Notes: generated by a model from the letters alone, not told the origin. A DNA stretch of 63,083 bases, filler included, from Platydemus manokwari (GCA_037951405.1; 5 parts of 5 records of this genome joined end to end with filler, not necessarily neighbours in it), one strand, 5' to 3'. Positions 38,922 through 51,227 are shown, numbered from the whole stretch's first letter. Numbers and translations are program-made.

Positions 38922-40075
38922 TATATCATTATCATTCATCACCAATTTTGGGAGTAATTTTGTTGAGTAGAGACTGATAAAACGAGTGAGGAAAGTAGTA
39001 TTAAAATCAAAAAACGAAGTTTAAATTCAAATATCGATTTCTACGCCGATCCACTTATCTCCATATAAGTTGCGATCGTCGAGGCAAATAAATATTAAAA
39101 CGTATAAGGTCATAATACTACATGAAGATCAAGTCGGACTCAAAGTACTGATAAGACATAGAATTCGATCGATCAAAAGAGAGAATAATAAAAACCATAA
39201 AGTGCGTGACCCCCAAACGTATCAATTAAAACTCACAATACAAAACCACAAGAACACGATAGGCAGATTTTTACAAGGACCCGAACGTAACATCGACGAT
39301 TCATTGCCGAGACAGGGATTAGTATATGCCCAGTATTTTCTACTGGAAAAACAAATAGTAAGATAATACATTTAAAATCGTACATTCAATTATATATAAC
39401 GCATATTCTTCCTATTTATCGAGCTGACCTCTAAAAATACTCTGAAGAAACGGTCACTGGCCCAATAGCACGAAGGGTAACTGTTGGTCCTCAATCTGCT
39501 TCCCTGAATTGTATATAAATCCCGTCACTTAAGTTTATAAAAGTAGTTGTATAAAATCATTGTATATCGCAGTAATTTATATTCATTTTTAATAATTCTA
39601 TATAATTGTCATATAAGTAGTAATTTATAGCCTTAATTGTACAAAAAATAGTAATTCATAATTTGGTGTATAATTGTAATTAATAATAATCATTGTTATA
39701 CAAACATTGAGTTGGGTTTTAAATCTACCAGTTGGCCTAGGACAACACAATTTCATTATACATAAATTTCATTGTCATTCATAACCTTTTAAAATTATTC
39801 TAGTGCATTATTAAATGAGACTGATAGTATAAACCAATAATATCAAAAATCAATACCAAAAATAGGACGATAATAGAGACAATTACCAAAATAAAATCGA
39901 TTTATACACCGATCCGCTTATCATTATATAAGTTGCTATCGTCGAGGCGAAATAACGTCAAAACATATAGATCATATTACTACCTAAGGGTCAATACGGA
40001 CTCAGAGTACTAATAAGACGCAGACAAAAATAATAATAAAGAATAAAAAGAGAATGACACCCAAAACGTAATACT
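38922..40075. repeat. Two tandem diverged repeat family B (LTR-like) copies
   Basis: ccgatcc(a/g)cttatc...tataagttgc(g/t)atcgtcgaggc...cggactca(a/g)agtact(g/a)ataagac occurs at ~39045-39160 and ~39908-40020. Confidence 0.75.
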
Positions 40076-40464
40076 TACTTGACATCATGAATTTCATCTG
40101 AAAATTCAGAAAAATATTTTCTTTAAAAGAAGTACATGATTAATTGCTTTGATAAAATAAATTTGCATTTTTGCATATTGAAAAAGTCTCATATCTAACA
40201 ATAAGAAGTATGTGATATATACTATTATCTGAAACACTGGTGAAAATCATAAATTAAATAATAAATAAATTGTATTCCTAATAACTTAATTCATGTTCAT
40301 AAATTAAATATTATTCTTACAAATTTATTTTTATTAAGATAATTTTGCAATAATTTTGCTTAATAAAATAGTTTACGTTTATTAAATGAAAACAATAGAA
40401 TAAGAATCATTGTTCATTCGCGTTTGTTTAATTACAATATTTGATAACCTTCATTTTCTAAAAC

Positions 40465-43041
40465 ATGAAATTTAAAAATTTAGAAAATGAATCTCTACTT
40501 GTAGATATCAAAGAAGATGATAATATTCAGCAAGTAATTACGAAATTGGCAGAAAAGCTTTCAGTAGAATATGAAGACATCATATTGATGTATAAAAATG
40601 TACGTCTTGACATTGATAAATGCTTAACTCAGTATAATATTGGATATGAGGATTTTGTTTTGGTACTTCAAAACAGGTAAATTAAAGGGATGTCATTTTA
40701 TGATTGCTGCTGTCTATAATTTATTTATATTTATTTATGATTTAATTGTTCTTGTGGATTATTGGTCTTAAATATGAGTTCTTACTTTATCTAGGTAGTT
40801 TAAATAATTATTTTGTACAGCTTTGATCATTGGCTTGAAAAATCATTAATATTTTAATAATTTCTTAATGTTTTAATGCATTCTAAAACCTGCAGTCGCA
40901 AGCACTCTAGAAGTCCCGTTTCCGTTAAAAAACCATCTCAAGTTTTAAAACATGTAAAGAAAATCGATAACGATTATCCTCAAATGGAAAGTGAGCACGA
41001 TCTCGGAGACATTTTAAAGTAATTGTTCAAGGTATGATTTATGTGACAAATAAATAACAGGAAAAAAGAAAAATCGAATTTGTCATTATCATTAAAGTGT
41101 GTTAATCCAAATTATAAAGCTTTTAAATTCAAGATGGAAAAAGGAAAGAATATTGATTATTTTTTAGATTATTTGTCGAAACAAATCAATGTTCCATCAT
41201 CTAATATCAAAGTTTTTAAGGATAAGAATCTAAAAGGTGCTGTCAGTGACAATATAGATATTAATAAAATATGGAAATCAAATAAATTTAAACAGAAACT
41301 TTATTATGATATTATACCAAGGTAAAATTATAACTTCAACAAACGTTATTAAACGATTCTCAGTGTTGATAATCTCATTAAACAAGAAATGCTCGGTCAA
41401 GGAGCATTTGGACGAGTTTACAAATGCGTCGAAATCGGGTCTCAAAAAGAATTTGCTTTGAAAGAATTTCGAATATCACAACAGAAATCGTTTGAATTAT
41501 TAAAATCTGAAATCGATATTTTATTAAAAATCGGTGATCATCCAAGGATTGTCAAAGTGATCAAGAAAATTGAAAAAGAGAACAATTTATACATATTGAT
41601 GGAATATGCGCCCAGAGTATCATGATTGTGTTTGTATCGATTGTTTGTGTTGAACTATTTGTAGGGATCTCTCGGAAGATATTGTAAAACTGTAGGTCCT
41701 TTGAATGAAAATAAGATTTCCAAATATAGTTATCAAATATTAGAAGCTTTGGAATATTTGCATAAGAAAAAGGTTCTTCATCGAGATATCAAAGGTACTT
41801 TGTTTATAAATCATCATTTATTTACATTCACATAGAATCGAGAGATTTCAAATTAATTTTTTTTAGATTTTATCTCATACAACTAATAAGCAAAATAATG
41901 AAGAAGTCACAGAGCTGAAATATTGGTAATCTCAAATAAAAAAATTGAAATTTAGTCTTTTGTATTTAAAATGTATTTTCTTATGTGAAATACAAGATTT
42001 GTATTAATTTTTTAAATTGTTATTATTTTTCGAACTAGAATTCATCGAACTATTGATTTGTTACTGCAAATGTAGTATTGATGTTGTAATTAATGATGAT
42101 AATTTATAAGTGAATTTAAAGAAATAAGTAATTGCATCAAATAATCTAATAAAACGATTATAATTTTTAACTTAATTTTTAAAAAGTCGTTAGTTTTTTA
42201 TTAAATGTGGTAACTAATAATTTTTGTTTATTACTAATATATATATATATATATATATAGTTTTCATAAATTAATAAAATGAAAGATTTTTATTAGCATT
42301 GATTATATCTAATAAATTTCCAGATAAGCGATAAAATCAATGAAATTTTATGATTGCTTTCAGAATATCAAGTCTGTTCAGATAATCCACTGAAGAGCAT
42401 AAAGCTGAAATATTGATAATCTCATAAAAAATTTGCAATTTTATTCTAGCAAAATTTCAAGAAATCAATATTAATTGAAACTTCAGACGAAGCACCTGAT
42501 CACTTTGTTAAATCTAATGTAACATTGACTCCTGCATAAATTGTTTCCTTGAATAGTTTATTTAAAATGTAGGAGACAACATCTTGATATTTGAAGATGA
42601 ATGTTTAAAATTATGCGATTTCGGTTTGGCAAAAATATTGACAGATATCGCTAGTGCCGATTTATTGAATGGTGTTGCGCAATCGAATGTCGGTACTGCT
42701 AATTGGATGGCACCAGAAGTTATACGTGAAGAAAATTATGGATCTTCTGCAGATATTTGGTCTTTTGGTGCTACAGTTGTAGAAATGTTAACCGGTAATT
42801 TGATGATAGAATGAAAATGGTTTTGAATTTATTTATAGGAATGCCTCCGTATAATGGGTTGAGTTTATATCAAATAGTTTACAAAATTTGTCAGGACAGG
42901 AAGCTGGAATATATTGAACCTGAAAATCTGAGTCGGCAGTTGAAATCATTTTTAGATTCTTGTTTGCAAGCTAATCCACGTGACAGACCTCAGGCATCAG
43001 AACTATTAAAACATGAATTCGTTACTGTTGTCAAGAGATGA
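40465..43041 (+). CDS. STE11/MAP3K-like Ser/Thr kinase with N-terminal ubiquitin-like domain(s), 7 exons, 467 aa
   Basis: Exons 40465-40676, 40896-41018, 41061-41321, 41364-41616, 41665-41794, 42573-42794 and 42839-43041 join with GT-AG introns into an open 1404-nt frame. Motifs: LGQGAFG, FALKE, MEYAPRGSL, HRDIKGDNIL, DFG, GTANWMAPE, DIWSFG, TGMPP. Confidence 0.93.
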
Positions 43042-45049
43042 TTTATTCTATCATTTTTTTTAAATAAAATAATTTTTTATTGATATAAGTTGATTGAATG
43101 CATAAATGCCAAATATTGATTGATTATATTATATTTTGTTTAACTGGGCCTGTATAGATAATTAATGCACTTTTGAAAAAAATGTAAATCTAGACTCTTA
43201 ACTATTAGCGATAAATGGTCACATGATTGATTTGTTGTATGTAACAGGATGTTAACTGTAAATTTTCGCCGATTTTGTTGAATGCAGCAGTGAAGTATAA
43301 AAATAATATAAAATATTTTTTGATAAACGCAAGAACTAATTTTACAATCTTAGAATTATTAATAAACAATATATCTAATTTCGTAAATATCGTTCCTTTG
43401 TTGTATTATAAAATACTGCATCTTTTTATTAGTTGTGACAAAATGTTGATATCCATTACTTCTTTGATATGAATGATGGATTTGCGAAATCATAGTTTTT
43501 TTTTTAAACAAGTATTGTCTTTTATTGATTAAATAACGTAATTAATTTCAATCAATTGAGTAAAAATAGAAATGTATTACTAATGGTGACAATATTTAAT
43601 AAAAATCTTCAAGTATGCTCTATTGACGTATTAAGTGATAATAAAATGTTATAATTTTAACGTTGACTAATTGTGTGTAATTTGATCACTAATAAATGGA
43701 TTGTTGATTAAAAAAGTTCCGGTGCTAAGATGCAACAACTTAAACAAATGTATTCTTATTTGTTATTTTTTGGATGGTTTATTTAAAAATATGATAAATA
43801 ATTAAAATTAACATAAGATTAAAATTATAAAAACTTGAGTTAAAAAATATTTTACAAAAAACTATATTAAAAATAAATATACGATATTGATATTTATAAA
43901 ATGATCTGGCTTTAAAAAATTACTTTTAACTTCTCTATTTTGAAAAATTATTAAAATTATTAAGAGTAATTTTAAATTAAAAAAGATGTAAAATAAAATT
44001 GTGATCATTTTTAGTTGAATTAAAGAAGAAAAATCAGATGGAAATAAATTTTAAATATATTTTTGTGCTGGTGAAAACATGACTTTTGGTTGAAAAATTA
44101 AAGACGAAGAAATTTTGGCAACTAATTTTTTTAATGGATCTATGATATATAATTCTGGAAGGAGATTAGTTGTTTCAGGTATGTGTACTTGAAAGTTCGA
44201 TTTATGATAGTTATCGGATATTTTATTATAAATAACTGTCTCATCCATTAGGTTACCACAGTAATTATAAAAAATTATGGTCATGGTGGTTCCTGATTTA
44301 AAATTTTGTGATTTGAGTAGGATTGTTTTTGACATACTTTATAATAATATTTCTTTGATTTAATCACTCACACACAGATCTTAACTTAGATTTATTTTAA
44401 TTCAACTTTAATTTTTCTATTAATTCATTATCTACGTTGAATTATTTTTCAAATATCACAAAAAGTGAGAATGAAAAAATTACTGTAACAATAATATCTA
44501 CAGAGATGTGGGTAAATTCAATGCTTTGTAAGACAACGCTACTTAGAAAAATGAAAAAATAAATGAAATAAAATTTTTTCCCTGAATAATAATCGGTAAT
44601 AGAACATTCTTTCAATTAGAAAAATGAACAAATTGAATTTAAGCTGACAGAATGTAAATAGTGGCATCTATCTGTAACCAAATAAATTAAATCATCTAGT
44701 AGGCTCCTACTAATCTAGTCTTATTTTAGATTTGAACACATACGATTTTCCAACTATTTTAATATTGCGCAGTAATTTTGAATTCATGTGAATATTAAGG
44801 TTGGAATATTAGTAAATTACTCTTTCTATACTTTCATTCATTACAATTTGGTGGCATTAGTTCCTTTCATGTCTTTTTCAGCAGTTTTATGCAGGTTTAT
44901 TATAATGAAATAAAGAACTAGAAAAGACTGGAAGAACACCAACGAAGAAAATTTTGTTTGCTGAAATAATCTTCCGGAATTTTTAGTGTCTTATTATTCA
45001 AAGATAAATTTTGCAACTTTAATTTGCTAACGTTATCATTAAACAAAAT

Positions 45050-45960
45050 GTTTATTAACAAAATATTTATTATTAATATTAATGAAAAAACATTGGCAAA
45101 ACAAAGCTACTTTTGACCCAAGAATTCAACTAATATGCTGGTTTAATGAATTTTCAAAGCAAGGACTAGTACAGAATAATGGGTTATTTGTTAAAGATGT
45201 TGAAAGTTATGGAAGAATATATTTTAGAATCTTTAACTTATCTGGACTCTAACAGATAAGAATTGTTGCTGCAAATTAGTCCCCAGATCATATTAAAAAT
45301 TGTCTTTAAAATATAAATACTAATCATAAAATCAAACAAATACAAAATTATAGACTATATTTGATTTATTGAAATAATTTAATAACACCAGCAAGAAAAA
45401 TATAACGCTATTGTATGAGCACAATACTCTCAAGATAAAAGCAAAAGGCTCGTTGTCTAGGTGTTGGTACAGGTCTCCCTTTAAAAAAGACGGTGGGGAA
45501 GCAAGTTTGTGTATCTTATTGGATTAGAAAAGACCACAAGGCCAAGAGTTTTGAAGAATCAAAGATACGAAAAAAATTTCCTTGAAGCTTATCAAAGAGT
45601 ATTAAAGATGTCTGAACCGCAGATGTAATACAATTTTTTTTAAGATATATAGTAAAAGTAATATTGTTTACACGCTTGAGGAGCTGTAATCATATCAAGT
45701 TATGTACTAACATACAAGGAAATGTGATTGTATGCTCAGCAGTAGTCCTTCGGCCAGTAACGCAGAATTGTCCTTAGGGTAGATCCAACGTTGTTGATAT
45801 CCAAACTTATATTAAGGGCTTGGCTCTAGTGTGGATACCAATTCGATAAAGTTGTAAAGCTTTTATAAAAATCATTTTTAGTGAAGCATACCTGATTACT
45901 TATTTGGTGTCGAATGATTTGATGGAAACTTGTTTGGTGATGATTGATAGTGAATCAACG
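45050..45960 (+). mobile_element. Degenerate gypsy protease/RT relic
   Basis: KATFDP (protease-like) and LKKDGGEASLCI (~45480; cf. KKDGxxRxC); many stops. Confidence 0.35.
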
Positions 45961-46039
45961 ATTTTTCAACCGTTAATTAACTATATATTTAAATGAGTTG
46001 CTGTGAGCTAGAGATTGATGTTCCCACCAATATCTGAAA

Positions 46040-46760
46040 CTTCACAGATTAATAGGTTGCGTGAAATGAGTTATGTAATAATATGAATAAGAATAACAAT
46101 AATATGATAACAATACTTTATTATAGTAAATATTAACAAATGTCTGATGCTTTATGGTTAGAAAGAGTAAGTTGTTGTGCCCGGAAGTTTTATCAGTAAA
46201 TATCAACCGCCGGAGGGAACTAAGTGGCGCCCCATTGAGGTATGAAAACTAAAGAAATAGTGATTTTAAACTCACAAACTCTGTTACGATTTTGTGAGGA
46301 TTTAATGTTCACTGACAACAAATCTCCTTTCGGAGAATGATATCAGGTGAGTGAAACAATAACAAATTTTTACCATTTGAATAATATTTGCACTGATCAA
46401 GAAATAACAATTATTGCCGGAGGCTTGAATGAATGCTTGATTATTTGCTTGTTAACTTGAAGTTGAATCCCGAATTGAATATTTGAACTGAAATCCCGAA
46501 CTAGATACTTGACTTTATAATCACTGTGTCGTGAGAAATTGTGGCGAAAATACTGAATTTTACTTCAGTATTTATACGGATTTGGAATGTGGGTGAATGA
46601 TTAATTTTGTTCCTGATTTGTGGGTTTCCTTAGTAATATTCACCGTTGTCATGGCAATTTGTATTTAAATTTGAATTTCTATGGCTATATTTCGGATTGC
46701 CATGACAACGTGGATTAATAATTTGTCGAAAAAATTTTATATCTATTATTAATATCATTC
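46040..46760. repeat. Repeat family C copy (LTR-like, ~0.7 kb)
   Basis: Colinear with the reverse complement of ~58180-58900 (acagattaa.aggttg, tctgatgc, gaactaa, atgaaaact, aatctcct.t.ggaga, atgattaattttg, aacgtggattaat). Confidence 0.8.
46624..46710. promoter_or_regulatory. Cluster of RFX X-box-like motifs inside repeat family C
   Basis: GTTTCCTTAGTAAT, GTTGTCATGGCAAT, ATTTCTATGGCTAT and ATTGCCATGACAAC compared with the X-box consensus GTTGCCATGGCAAC. Confidence 0.5.
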
Positions 46761-47189
46761 CACCCACACGCCTACATTTTAATTAATGTGGGTTTTCAGT
46801 TTGATTATTATTATTATTATGTATTATCTATTATTATGTAATTTATAGGCTTGCAGCCTGCATGGGTATTATCCCGTCAGTAGGACGAATATTAGGTTTG
46901 GTGAAGTTAAACGGTAAATAAGTTGGGTGGGTAATCCCAACAATTTTAATACTATTTGAGTTTATCTTATGATCACTGTAGTCTTGATCAGTCTCAAAGA
47001 GTTCTGGTTCAAGTTCACAGGTACAGTTATTAACCGTAATTTTTTGTATTTTCCCTCACGCAACAATATTATATGATGACAGTATGTCCAGCAACAATGA
47101 TACTACATATTTCAATTTAACAGCCACAATATATACGGGCACCCTTATTTATATCAAATTTAACTAATATTAACTTCTTAATCAATAAA

Positions 47190-47500
47190 AAACCACTTGA
47201 ATACTCTGAAGTTTATTGAATAAGACACCGATTACAAATAAAAATATGAAAATTACACTTAACAATGATTTTAAAACGATGGTATACACTTAACTTTAGA
47301 CGATAGCTTTAACGAAGTTCTGGATTGAAGAATGGTTGGTAAACTTCTTCTCCTGGGGCAAAACCAAATACTTGAAGAGTTCTTTTTGAGATAAAGCTCG
47401 GTATTAAAAAATATACGATAAATATATAGTAACGATCAGTTGGTTACAATAAAGTCGAACTCACATTTACTTGTAGGCTTTGCAAATATATCTGCCATGC
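47190..47500. repeat. Repeat family A partial copy
   Basis: gtttatt, gacacc, ctggat, ggtaaac, aaccaaatac and acgataaa are colinear with ~1255-1480. Confidence 0.6.
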
Positions 47501-48947
47501 AAATTTACGAAGATAACACGTCTTCTGCTGGTTTCCAAAATACACTAGGGCAAACCTCTAATGATTTTAACCCATATTTATATATTCTGATGATCAAGCT
47601 TTATTTTGTCTCATTATTTGTTCATTTTGTTACCATTAATTTTGATCTTTAATTCTATTGTTATTATTTTTTTGAATATTGTATAAATACTAAATTATTG
47701 CTGATATTTTCTTTTTAGCAATAATAATGAACTAACTGAATTTTGTTATTGTTGTCTTTCTTTCAATATTATTACAAAATATTACTATAATTTATTAACT
47801 ATTTATAATAATAATTATTATTTTTCTAATTAACTTCTTACTAATTATTCAAACCATACGATGTCACGACTTTTCATAAATAAATAACACTAAAAAGTTT
47901 TAATTCGATACAATTGTGGATGTTCCAATTACCAATGTACAGGTAACAATAATTGCTAACAAAATGATAACCGGAACGATCGATGGCCTAGAATGTTTCA
48001 TATAACCAGAGTCAGATGATGAAACGAATAACCAGTGGGAAAAACGAACATATCAATCACGAGATACTGTGACAGTGTTAGTAAGTGTATTATTAGCAAA
48101 AATCTCGTTCTAATAAAAATTATTTCTCCGAAGGTACCTTGCAGTAGATTTATTTTATTCGGAAATTTTATTGTCAACTCTGAAATGCTTAGTGTTAAAT
48201 TTTATTTTATTTCCAGTAGAAGTGTCATTTAGACGAATTTTAAATTTTCTCTGCATATTTCAGCCATGATAAAATTGATAAATGAAATCGGGTTTATGAG
48301 TATAATTTTGATTTGAATTCAAGGTGCTAATGTAATGAACAGGATTGATCAGCAACTTTCAGAAATTATTTTACAATTGAAAAACAAGGTTTTTAATTAT
48401 TTGTGGGTGTTTTATTAATAAATATTATAAAATTAGCCTTAATTTGTTTTTTCCTTAACGAGAAGGTTCTTAAGGAATTCAATTTTGAATAACTTACTTT
48501 TATATTCCAAATTACATGTAAACTATTTATGATATTATAAAAAAGTTATATTTGAGTTATGAAGTTCTTCAGTAAATCAGGTAATGATTTAAATATGTTT
48601 ATATTATCCACAGGAAAATTCCGCTAAATATGAATATAATAAAATAAATTTAAGACATGAATACTAAAAAAATAAAATAATTAAATGATGAAATATTTGG
48701 TTGTAAAAATTCGATCTACCCCATAAACAATTTAAATAAATAAAATATTTTATAATAAAATTATTGATTATTTTATGTAGTAAAATAATTTATTTAAAAC
48801 GACGAAAAAATTTCCAATGATTTCATGTATTGAACTTAAAAAAAATCAATACAAAAGTGACAAGACAAACAACTTTCATCAAATTCTTAAACTGAAAATA
48901 ACCTTGAATAACACTGAATAAAAATTGGCATCAAAATATTACAAGTC

Positions 48948-49142
48948 TCATTGTGAACTATTTATATTGTTTGAAAAATGACAACATTCACCATCATAAT
49001 AAGATTTCTTGCTTAAATTTATTCCAACAGCCTCCACAATGAATCCGATTGACTTCAATTCTTGATGGTCCAAAATCAATCTCCCGTCGAATATATATGG
49101 AGGATGTTTCATCTTTTCGTAGACTTGTTTAAAATCAACACT
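48948..49142 (-). CDS. UGDH: UDP-glucose 6-dehydrogenase, terminal exon only
   Basis: After a ttag acceptor it reads SVDFKQVYEKMKHPPYIFDGRLILDHQELKSIGFIVEAVG...*, matching the UGDH C-terminus (LDYxxI...MxKPAFIFDGR..LD..L..IGF). Upstream exons were not found before the contig end. Confidence 0.88.
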   Translation of the reverse strand, partial: SVDFKQVYEKMKHPPYIFDGRLILDHQELKSIGFIVEAVGINLSKKSYYDGECCHFSNNINSSQ

Positions 49143-49688
49143 CTAATGAATTACCGTTATCAGTGAAGTATGAGAAATAAGGTATTCCATGAATATAAAC
49201 ATTTATGTTAAAATGTGTTTATTAAAGGTTTTGACAAAAAGAATTACATACGAATTATGACAAATATAATTCTAGAATATATTTGGAATTTTAAACTGTA
49301 AGATAAATATTAAAACAGCTAAAAATAGAGATTTCAGTGCAAATATACCAGAAAGTTTTAAAAATACAATCATGTTTTGATAATAAATTAGATTATAAAA
49401 TTTTGCAATAGAAATAATAATATGAATCTTCAAAAGAATTTCAATAGTCGTTCGAGAAAGCATTTATTTAAAAGAAATGACGAAGAACTCTTAAATGAAA
49501 GACTGATAGAATATCATTTGTTTATTAGTTGATCCAAGGTCAATTGATCTCACTAATTTCTTTGGTGAAGAAGTTAATTTCAACATATTAATACTTATAA
49601 AAAATAACCTATTGGATCAAGTGAGACATCATATTATTGGTTGAGTTATATCAACAAAACTTCATCGATTATTTTAGTATAGAATATA

Positions 49689-50966
49689 TAGGGGCCAGCA
49701 AAAAACATTTCGTTTTTATCAGTAAGAAAATATCTGAAGATCAAAGTTAAAATTTTCTAGGTAGATCATTAACAAGACTAGAAAGTTCAAGATTTAAATT
49801 TTAAAAAATCGATTAGAGTTGGTTATATGATTTAGCCTGAAGGCAGAGCAATGCGACATAAATTTCATCGTTGCAACTTTAACAAGAAATAACTTTCCGG
49901 TCTCCGAAATCCATTGCTTTCTTGTCGAAAGTTGAGTAGCAGAAAACGCTGTCAGCCTTCGGAAAGTACAGCAGATTACCAAAATGTTTGTAGGAGAACG
50001 GCAAACACTTTTCGAGTGAAAAGAAGGTTCAGAAAGACTAAGAACGAGCACTGCAGAAGAGAATGTAGTTATTGAGCGTTAAATGATTGAAGAAAATTGA
50101 CACATAAGCTGTCTAGCCATTTCAAGAGTCACTGACATTAAAGAAACGACTGTTCGCCGCATATTGAAACGAGAACTTTAAAGAAGTCATTTTGCAGCAA
50201 ATGGATTTCTCACATTCTGACGAATAATAAGAAGAGAGTCACTCACTGTTAAGAAATGTTGAATGTTTATTTGACAAGAAAGACTAAGGAAAAGATCTTT
50301 GTGATTGATGAAAAAGGATTTACCTTCGAAACGTACCTCCAAAAGAATGCAACCGTGTTTTGGTGAATGGCACAATATCTGATCGTAAAGTTCTGATTAA
50401 TGTTGCCAGCAACTATGCAAAATCACTCACGTATTTTGAAATTCTTCACGATGGTGGATTCATCAACACTAAGAGATACCTACAATTCTTCAGAATATGG
50501 TTTTAAACTTTTAAACAAGACTAACTGCTTCGGAAATGATCATTCAGCATGACAATGGCGGGCCTCATGCAGCGCAGTTGATTCGACTTTGGCTTGAAGA
50601 ACATCGCGTGTCTCTGTTAAAACAGCCGGCTTACCCACCCGACACAAGTCTCGTAGGTTGCTTTATCTTCAGGAACTAAGAGTGCTATCGACATGGAAAA
50701 ACTTCAAAAATTCAGGAGAAGTGAGCAACCATTTCGCCAATATTTGAAGTCAACATAGAAGGCCAAGCTCACAAGTGAGTTTCAAAATTTTACACGTCAC
50801 CTTCAGAGCGTCATTGAAGCTGATGGAGACTATGTTTAGGCTCTCTTATGGTTTGCTAACATTTTTAGTATAATTGCACATGTGATTTTCACAAATAAAT
50901 GTTTTAAATTGTATTTTTTTTAGATTTCACCGACATAGAAAAACGAAATTTTTTTGCCGGCCCCTA
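49689..50966 (+). mobile_element. Full-length but inactive mariner (DD34D) element, ~1.28 kb
   Basis: TIRs TAGGGGCCAGCAAAAAACATTTCGTTTTT and AAAAACGAAATTTTTTTGCCGGCCCCTA with TA flanks. Transposase pieces: VIDEK, QHDNGGPH...QPAYPPDTSLVG (34-residue spacing, third D changed to G), VIEADGDYV*. Confidence 0.92.
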
Positions 50967-51227
50967 TATTTATAACTTCTATAATATTTTATTTTGCTAG
51001 TCATTGAGGATTTAGTTGAAAAATATTGTGTTTTTTGTTAATAAATATTATTAATAACATTCCATGAGCCAAGTATTCAATCTAATTATTGCATTATTTA
51101 TATTTTAGGAAATCATTTTTCATTTTTCAAAAAACATTAAACTCGAAGTTTAAAAATTTAACTGTAACTCATTCGAGACTATCTGTCTAAAAATCAGAAA
51201 AAATAACTTTAAAAGAAAAATTCTTAA

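Follow-up and report, generated by a model that had tools for sequence, protein, structure and literature searches.

Gene structure and surrounding sequence

The window analysed in this work, i.e., the whole stretch of 63,083 nucleotides from Platydemus manokwari (GCA_037951405.1), contains at positions 38922-51227 the piece of real sequence surrounding the gene described here, an AT-rich piece whose GC content ranges from 0.19 to 0.38. Between positions 40465 and 43041, on the plus strand, seven exons with GT..AG borders throughout can be joined in frame to give 1404 nt with one terminal stop, which corresponds to a spliced frame of 467 codons and to a predicted protein of 467 residues. The start ATG is located at 40465, with an in-frame TAA about two to three codons upstream and no acceptor in between, and the TGA stop codon ends at 43041, with an AATAAA at 43063, 22 nt past the stop. 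The joined frame was assembled locally for frame, length and motif positions, and the searches and the folding were carried out exon by exon. The boundaries given in the initial annotation, as well as the peptides quoted in it, were found to be exact, and its description of the gene as intact is in agreement with the seven exons, their consistent phases and the single terminal stop.

Exon 1 (40465-40676) carries the start codon and a first ubiquitin-like unit (UBL1, residues 1-70), assigned to the ubiquitin family through Pfam PF00240 and an alignment with ubiquitin, and lacking a C-terminal Gly-Gly. Exon 2 (40896-41018) has an AG acceptor and a GT donor, is open in the frame of exon 1 and encodes a 41-residue basic linker rich in Lys, Ser and Pro. 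Exon 3 (41061-41321) encodes a second unit (UBL2, approximately residues 112-198), a predicted divergent ubiquitin fold placed directly before the kinase and recognized by AF2, Foldseek, VIA and a match to UN_NPL4. The kinase domain is distributed over the remaining exons: exon 4 (41364-41616) encodes the N-lobe with the Gly loop GQGAFGRV, the FALK lysine and helix C (Pfam Pkinase, E 9e-17, profile positions 3-81); exon 5 (41665-41794) helices D-E and the first part of the catalytic loop, HRDIKG (Pkinase, E 2e-10, positions 83-125); exon 6 (42573-42794) the remainder of the catalytic loop, DFG, the activation loop, APE and DIWSFG (Pkinase, E 2e-20, positions 127-192); and exon 7 (42839-43041) the end of the C-lobe (subdomains X-XI) together with the stop, with a Pkinase match to positions 217-263. 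All seven lie on the plus strand. The introns measure, from 5' to 3', 219, 42, 42, 48, 778 and 44 nt. Exon 4 cannot be extended upstream because of an in-frame TAA at 41350-41352.

The flanking stop frequency is 0.081 per codon and, on the basis of this rate, exons 1, 2 and 3 would remain free of stops in their frames with approximate probabilities of 0.003, 0.03 and 0.0007, respectively. The Pfam search with the linker encoded by exon 2 returned no family match, and the GC content of this exon is 0.37 vs. 0.23-0.26 in the flanking introns. Since its length (123 nt) is a multiple of three, exon 2 could be skipped with the frame kept, and it is possibly a cassette exon; its inclusion is nonetheless likely, given the open frame and the higher GC content. 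On these grounds we consider the gene to be real and intact, and predicted to encode a soluble Ser/Thr kinase, its exon joins being predicted ones, above all in the case of exon 2. Within the piece 38922-51227 the gene occurs only once.

As for the sequence surrounding the gene, a 128-bp direct repeat whose copies are 80% identical (39030-39157 and 39893-40019) lies upstream of it; no coding signal was found in this repeat, which probably represents two copies of a dispersed repeat. The sole long intron is intron 5 (41795-42572; 778 nt, GC 0.21), in which two directly repeated 41-bp stretches (41913-41953 and 42403-42441) share 88% identity and a (TA)n run occurs near 42237-42260; its length and its repeats, in a gene whose introns are otherwise short, suggest that it holds a small insertion. 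The downstream 6.6 kb (43042-49685) yielded no convincing gene, none of the tested ORFs of at least 40 aa having a Pfam match. A mariner/Tc1-like element of about 1284 bp follows at 49686-50969, with 32-bp terminal inverted repeats (49686-49717 and 50969-50939) that share 94% identity; stops and frameshifts interrupt its transposase frame, and only a weak match to DDE_3 was obtained (E 0.054, 50536-50676).

The ubiquitin-like units and the kinase domain

The comparison of UBL1 with the Pfam ubiquitin family (PF00240) gave 31 bits and an E of 2e-7, above the cut-off of 25.4 and with 67 of the 72 profile positions covered; UBL1 also passes the family cut-off of Rad60-SLD (25.8 bits). Residues 4-64 can be aligned without gaps to residues 6-66 of ubiquitin, and in this alignment the hydrophobic patch is represented by L6 at the position of Leu8 and M42 at that of Ile44, and L68 falls on Val70 only if the gapless register is extended by four residues. 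The much lower E (1e-27) obtained for exon 1 against the PDB was discounted, being inflated by the summed repeats of poly-ubiquitin (11-12 bits per ubiquitin unit in poly-ubiquitin chains and 17-18 bits for stand-alone ubiquitin chains), so that the Pfam score is the valid evidence. The unit begins at residue 1, as in Rad23-type UBL proteins, and ends with ...FVLVLQN, running into the linker with no Gly-Gly, which implies that it is not a cleavable modifier; Gly-Gly is also absent from UBL2, which runs into the kinase. Both units are thus predicted to be built-in, non-conjugatable ubiquitin-fold domains.

UBL2 is far more divergent. It lies below every Pfam cut-off, its sole match being the ubiquitin-fold family UN_NPL4 (E 0.009, 16.9 bits, with a cut-off of 21.9). 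The PDB sequence search returned no match, a language-model search pointed weakly to clusters of Rad60-SLD/ubiquitin, and no match was obtained when the exon 3 peptide was used in a word-index search of proteins, a result of little weight, since the length filter of this search excludes full-length relatives. The structural comparison is more informative. The AF2 model, built on a two-sequence alignment, has a mean pLDDT of 76 and shows the order beta-beta-alpha-beta-(short alpha)-beta (E6-13, E21-26, H31-42, E49-52, H67-72, E77-84). The best 38 Foldseek matches of this model are all ubiquitin-like domains (TM 0.56-0.74), as are 36 of the 36 matches at E <=1e-3 (TBCE UBL, SUMO, FAT10, UBL4A and ubiquitin), and the PB1 domains of p40phox and p67phox appear only at ranks 39 and 43. 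VIA-align gave a Z of 9.4 and an rmsd of 2.1-2.5 A over 73 of 86 residues (2.1 A vs. ubiquitin and FAT10), and the best fold matches obtained with Foldseek and VIA are ubiquitin, SUMO, FAT10 and the UBLs of midnolin, Get5 and TBCE. This supports, with moderate confidence, the idea that the unit encoded by exon 3 is a ubiquitin-like beta-grasp. It ends about 10 residues before the Gly-rich loop. The profile comparison of UBL1 with UBL2 revealed no similarity, so that the origin of the two units through a tandem duplication finds no support.

The initial annotation had described the first domain as ubiquitin-like and devoid of a terminal GG, and had proposed a second beta-grasp in exon 3 as a possibility to be checked with AlphaFold and Foldseek. 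The former statement is confirmed by the PF00240 score above the cut-off and by the way in which UBL1 runs into the linker; the latter gains support from that very check, run on exon 3, in which ubiquitin-like domains top all the matches, from VIA, and from the equivalent unit of the homologue described below.

Concerning the kinase domain, the Pkinase matches on exons 4-7 together span profile positions 3-263, and the motifs GQGAFGRV (residue 210), FALK (229), HRDIKGDN (322), DFG (342) and APE (373), as well as DIWSFG, are all recognizable. All the catalytic motifs of a eukaryotic protein kinase are therefore present, and the enzyme is predicted to be active, in agreement with the earlier description of a catalytically complete STE kinase directly following the ubiquitin-like units. 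The protein ends about 12 residues past subdomain XI with no C-terminal extension, and the predicted layout of the whole chain is UBL1, a basic linker of about 45 residues, UBL2 and the kinase, with nothing C-terminal to the latter.

The assignment of the kinase to the STE group is secure on the basis of the exon-wise comparisons, since STE kinases (MAP3K2, OSR1, MST3/4, PAK, SLK and TAO2) dominate the matches of exons 5, 6 and 7. The best PDB match of exon 5 is MAP3K2, followed by MAP3K14 and MAP3K5; the matches of exon 6 include MAP3K12, MAP3K2 (rank 4), OSR1 and MST3/4; those of exon 7 are headed by TAO2, MST3 and PAK1, with MAP3K2 absent from the top 60. MAP3K2 also ranks fourth with the N-lobe profile, although the N-lobe alone does not discriminate. 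It is known that MAP3Ks, e.g., ASK1 and MEKK, typically have the Gly of HRDIKGxN. Hence the sequence HRDIKGDN and the MAP3K2 matches provide a lead towards MAP3K (STE11), even though the summed exon bit scores of STE11 and STE20 tie. The earlier label of "MAP3K-type" kinase is in this respect sustained in part: it is favored by HRDIKGDN and by the position of MAP3K2 (first for exon 5, fourth for exon 6 and for the N-lobe), and it is not favored by exon 7, whose best matches are STE20 kinases.

A single close homologue and the breadth of the family

An exhaustive search of 1.84 billion representative proteins with the N-lobe peptide of exon 4 revealed one close relative, P0002 (UniParc UPI00060C3DBD), and no protein identical or nearly identical to the one encoded in the window. 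P0002 is a fragmentary record of 285 residues whose N-lobe is 55-56% identical to that of the kinase studied here, and its chain is continuous, an N-terminal unit of some 75 residues, a UBL2-like unit and the kinase following one another; the linker of exon 2 is absent from it. This continuity gives independent support to the presence of UBL2 and kinase in one chain.

The UBL2-like unit of P0002 is evidently homologous to exon 3, with which it shares 25% identity (phmmer E 8.6e-8) and the motifs IDY, LSK.IN.P and NI..F. When compared with the Pfam ubiquitin family it gave an E of 0.001 and 19.2 bits, under the cut-off of 25.4. The first unit of P0002 is only 11% identical to exon 1 and has no Pfam match; a language-model search led from it to ubiquitin clusters, at a level below that of trust. 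The AF2 model of residues 1-158 has a pLDDT of 59, with the second unit modelled well and the first one poorly. UBL2 is the better conserved of the two units in P0002; UBL1 is not recognizably conserved there, which makes a conserved docking role for it uncertain.

The P0002 sequence jumps from the end of the N-lobe to the activation-loop/APE region and lacks HRD and DFG, i.e., the catalytic core, as well as a start Met. The record thus resembles a gene prediction that is partial or mis-spliced more than it does a natural pseudokinase.

No unit similar to UBL1 or UBL2 was found in the other 149 of the best 150 matches of exon 4, and a word search with the whole P0002 matched only P0002 itself. 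A metagenome scan with the N-lobe alignment retrieved 14 loci, all of them generic kinases with 29-50% identity and none with a UBL1- or UBL2-like sequence. The cluster names of ten near kinases proved uninformative. Since one relative among the best 150 exhibits the layout N-terminal unit/UBL/kinase and the metagenome scan retrieved no other, the family looks narrow in the collections searched.

Possible role of the protein and comparison with known systems

A question concerns the role that two ubiquitin-like units might play ahead of an STE kinase. It is known that the N-terminal UBLs of Rad23, Dsk2 and UBLCP1 dock on ubiquitin receptors, and that the ULD of IKK-beta and TBK1 regulates the adjoining kinase. 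By analogy, UBL1 would most likely dock the kinase on a ubiquitin-binding partner (a UIM, a UBA or a proteasome receptor), an idea based on the hydrophobic residues at the positions of Leu8, Ile44 and probably Val70, and UBL2 would most likely pack against the kinase domain, tuning its activity or its choice of substrate. The kinase might then phosphorylate the partners brought near by UBL1, which may include a MAP2K if the kinase is truly of the STE11 type. We regard this scenario as a whole, in which a non-conjugatable UBL1 docks, UBL2 tunes and the STE kinase phosphorylates the docked partners, as the best explanation of the data and as a reasonably probable one.

A bolder proposal can be built on the same scenario, namely that the gene represents the founding member of a narrow group of kinases directed to ubiquitin receptors, in which UBL1 delivers an STE kinase to proteasome receptors or to UIM/UBA shuttle factors that are then phosphorylated. 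We consider this rather unlikely at present; if true, the protein would match, as a kinase, the UBL-phosphatase UBLCP1, and would have converged with the plant UbDK on the basis of another catalytic fold.

The alternative that best withstands the analysis is that the two beta-grasp units are not ubiquitin mimics and that they serve as a scaffold or adaptor of the PB1, RA or RBD type, tethering the kinase to a MAP2K or to a small GTPase. The PB1 domain of MEKK2/3 pairs with that of MEK5, and the RBD of RAF and the RA domain of Byr2/Ste11 bind a small GTPase; in fact, beta-grasp modules placed before MAP3K kinase domains usually act in this way, as in MEKK2/3 and RAF. The MAP3K-like features of the kinase (HRDIKGDN and MAP3K2 as best match for exon 5) and the appearance of p40phox and p67phox PB1 among the fold matches of UBL2 fit this idea. 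However, neither unit has a Pfam match to PB1, RA or RBD at E up to 1, UBL1 passes the cut-off of the ubiquitin family, the fold matches ranking best for UBL2 are ubiquitin itself, SUMO, FAT10 and UBLs, and no acidic OPCA-like cluster is visible by eye in UBL2. A scaffold of this kind appears improbable to us.

A different objection regards the gene model itself: exons 1-3 might be a separate small UBL gene, or non-coding, with the kinase starting within or before exon 4. An ATG does occur three codons ahead of the Gly-rich loop, at 41389, and, as the protein of the window or a nearly identical one is absent from the collection searched, no outside annotation backs the model. Nevertheless, the first beta strand would be missing from a kinase begun at 41389; no stop codon occurs within exon 3, which is closed by a good donor and lies just 42 nt from exon 4, the six joins (six of six) keep the frame with canonical GT..AG borders, and P0002 links a UBL2-like unit and a kinase in one chain. 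In our opinion, an artefact of this type is very improbable. The view that the gene is a lineage-specific duplicate, decaying or not expressed and intact in looks only, is scarcely credible in spite of its location among repeats and a dead mariner-like element, of the near absence of the family from databases and of a sole homologue record with no kinase catalytic core, given that 467 codons are free of stops where stops run at 0.081 per codon, that every catalytic motif is kept and that an AATAAA is found 22 nt past the stop.

Returning to the docking and tuning scenario, several known systems can be compared with the predicted protein. Like it, MEKK2 and MEKK3 (MAP3K2/3) are short proteins in which a beta-grasp module at the N-terminus accompanies an STE-group kinase, MAP3K2 being the best or near-best solved match for exon 5, exon 6 and the N-lobe profile. 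Their single module, however, is the MEK5-pairing PB1, whereas two units are present here, the first of which is a true ubiquitin-family domain. An orthologue of MEKK2/3 was rejected because no PB1 domain was found in exons 1-3 at E up to 1 in Pfam, in line with the initial annotation, which had not regarded the protein as a plain MEKK2/3 ortholog with one PB1.

In IKK-beta and TBK1 a ubiquitin-like domain is likewise part of the same chain as the kinase, which it contacts and regulates, but its place is C-terminal to the kinase, with a helical scaffold/dimerisation domain after it; in the protein studied here both UBLs precede the kinase, with which the chain ends. DCLK1/2 resemble it in having two tandem N-terminal beta-grasp domains followed by a Ser/Thr kinase; theirs are microtubule-binding DCX domains joined to a kinase of the CAMK group, whereas here the kinase belongs to the STE group and no Pfam match to DCX was found in the exon peptides. 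UBLCP1 and Rad23/Dsk2 share with it a non-cleavable UBL at the very N-terminus, which in their case docks on proteasome receptors; the UBL of UBLCP1 is combined with a phosphatase, while the effector here is a kinase.

The plant UbDK proteins are similar in that an N-terminal ubiquitin-like domain lies ahead of a kinase domain. The UbDK/type II PI4K-gamma enzymes UbDKgamma4 and UbDKgamma7 have tandem UBLs and phosphorylate RPN10 and UFD1, and protein kinase activity of UbDK was reportedly described by Galvao et al. in 2008. A published account that cites this study describes the catalytic domain of these plant proteins as being of the PI3/4-kinase type and endowed with protein kinase activity, with a UBL N-terminal to it (PMC3741686). 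Their catalytic domain is thus of the PI3/PI4-kinase type, in contrast to the one encoded here, which is a Pfam Pkinase domain, that is, a classical eukaryotic protein kinase. Owing to the absence of PB1 and DCX, the N-terminal position of the UBLs and the Pkinase domain, the gene lacks the defining features of each of the kinase families compared.

It is worth considering what such an arrangement would mean, as the modules that position and gate a kinase go a long way towards defining it. A ubiquitin-family domain located before an STE kinase would wire the ubiquitin-receptor machinery directly to a phosphorylation cascade. Should the UBLs dock on proteasome receptors, the protein would represent an independent invention of the solution adopted by plant UbDK, of which UBLCP1 would be the reverse in animals; if they only scaffold a MAP2K, it would indicate that ubiquitin-family domains can replace PB1 in the wiring of MAP3Ks. 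The case consists of one gene and one homologue, and with its 467 residues the protein is a small, intact one that could readily be expressed.

In the literature searched, whose coverage was incomplete, no description was found of two ubiquitin-family UBLs ahead of an STE kinase. The statement of the initial annotation that the architecture was not a recognized one agrees with this result as regards the exact combination; as a theme it was overstated, in view of the PB1 of MEKK2/3, the RBD of RAF, the DCX of DCLK and the plant UbDK. The theme, a beta-grasp module together with a kinase, is a known one, and what appears to be new is this particular combination, which is rare but not revolutionary.
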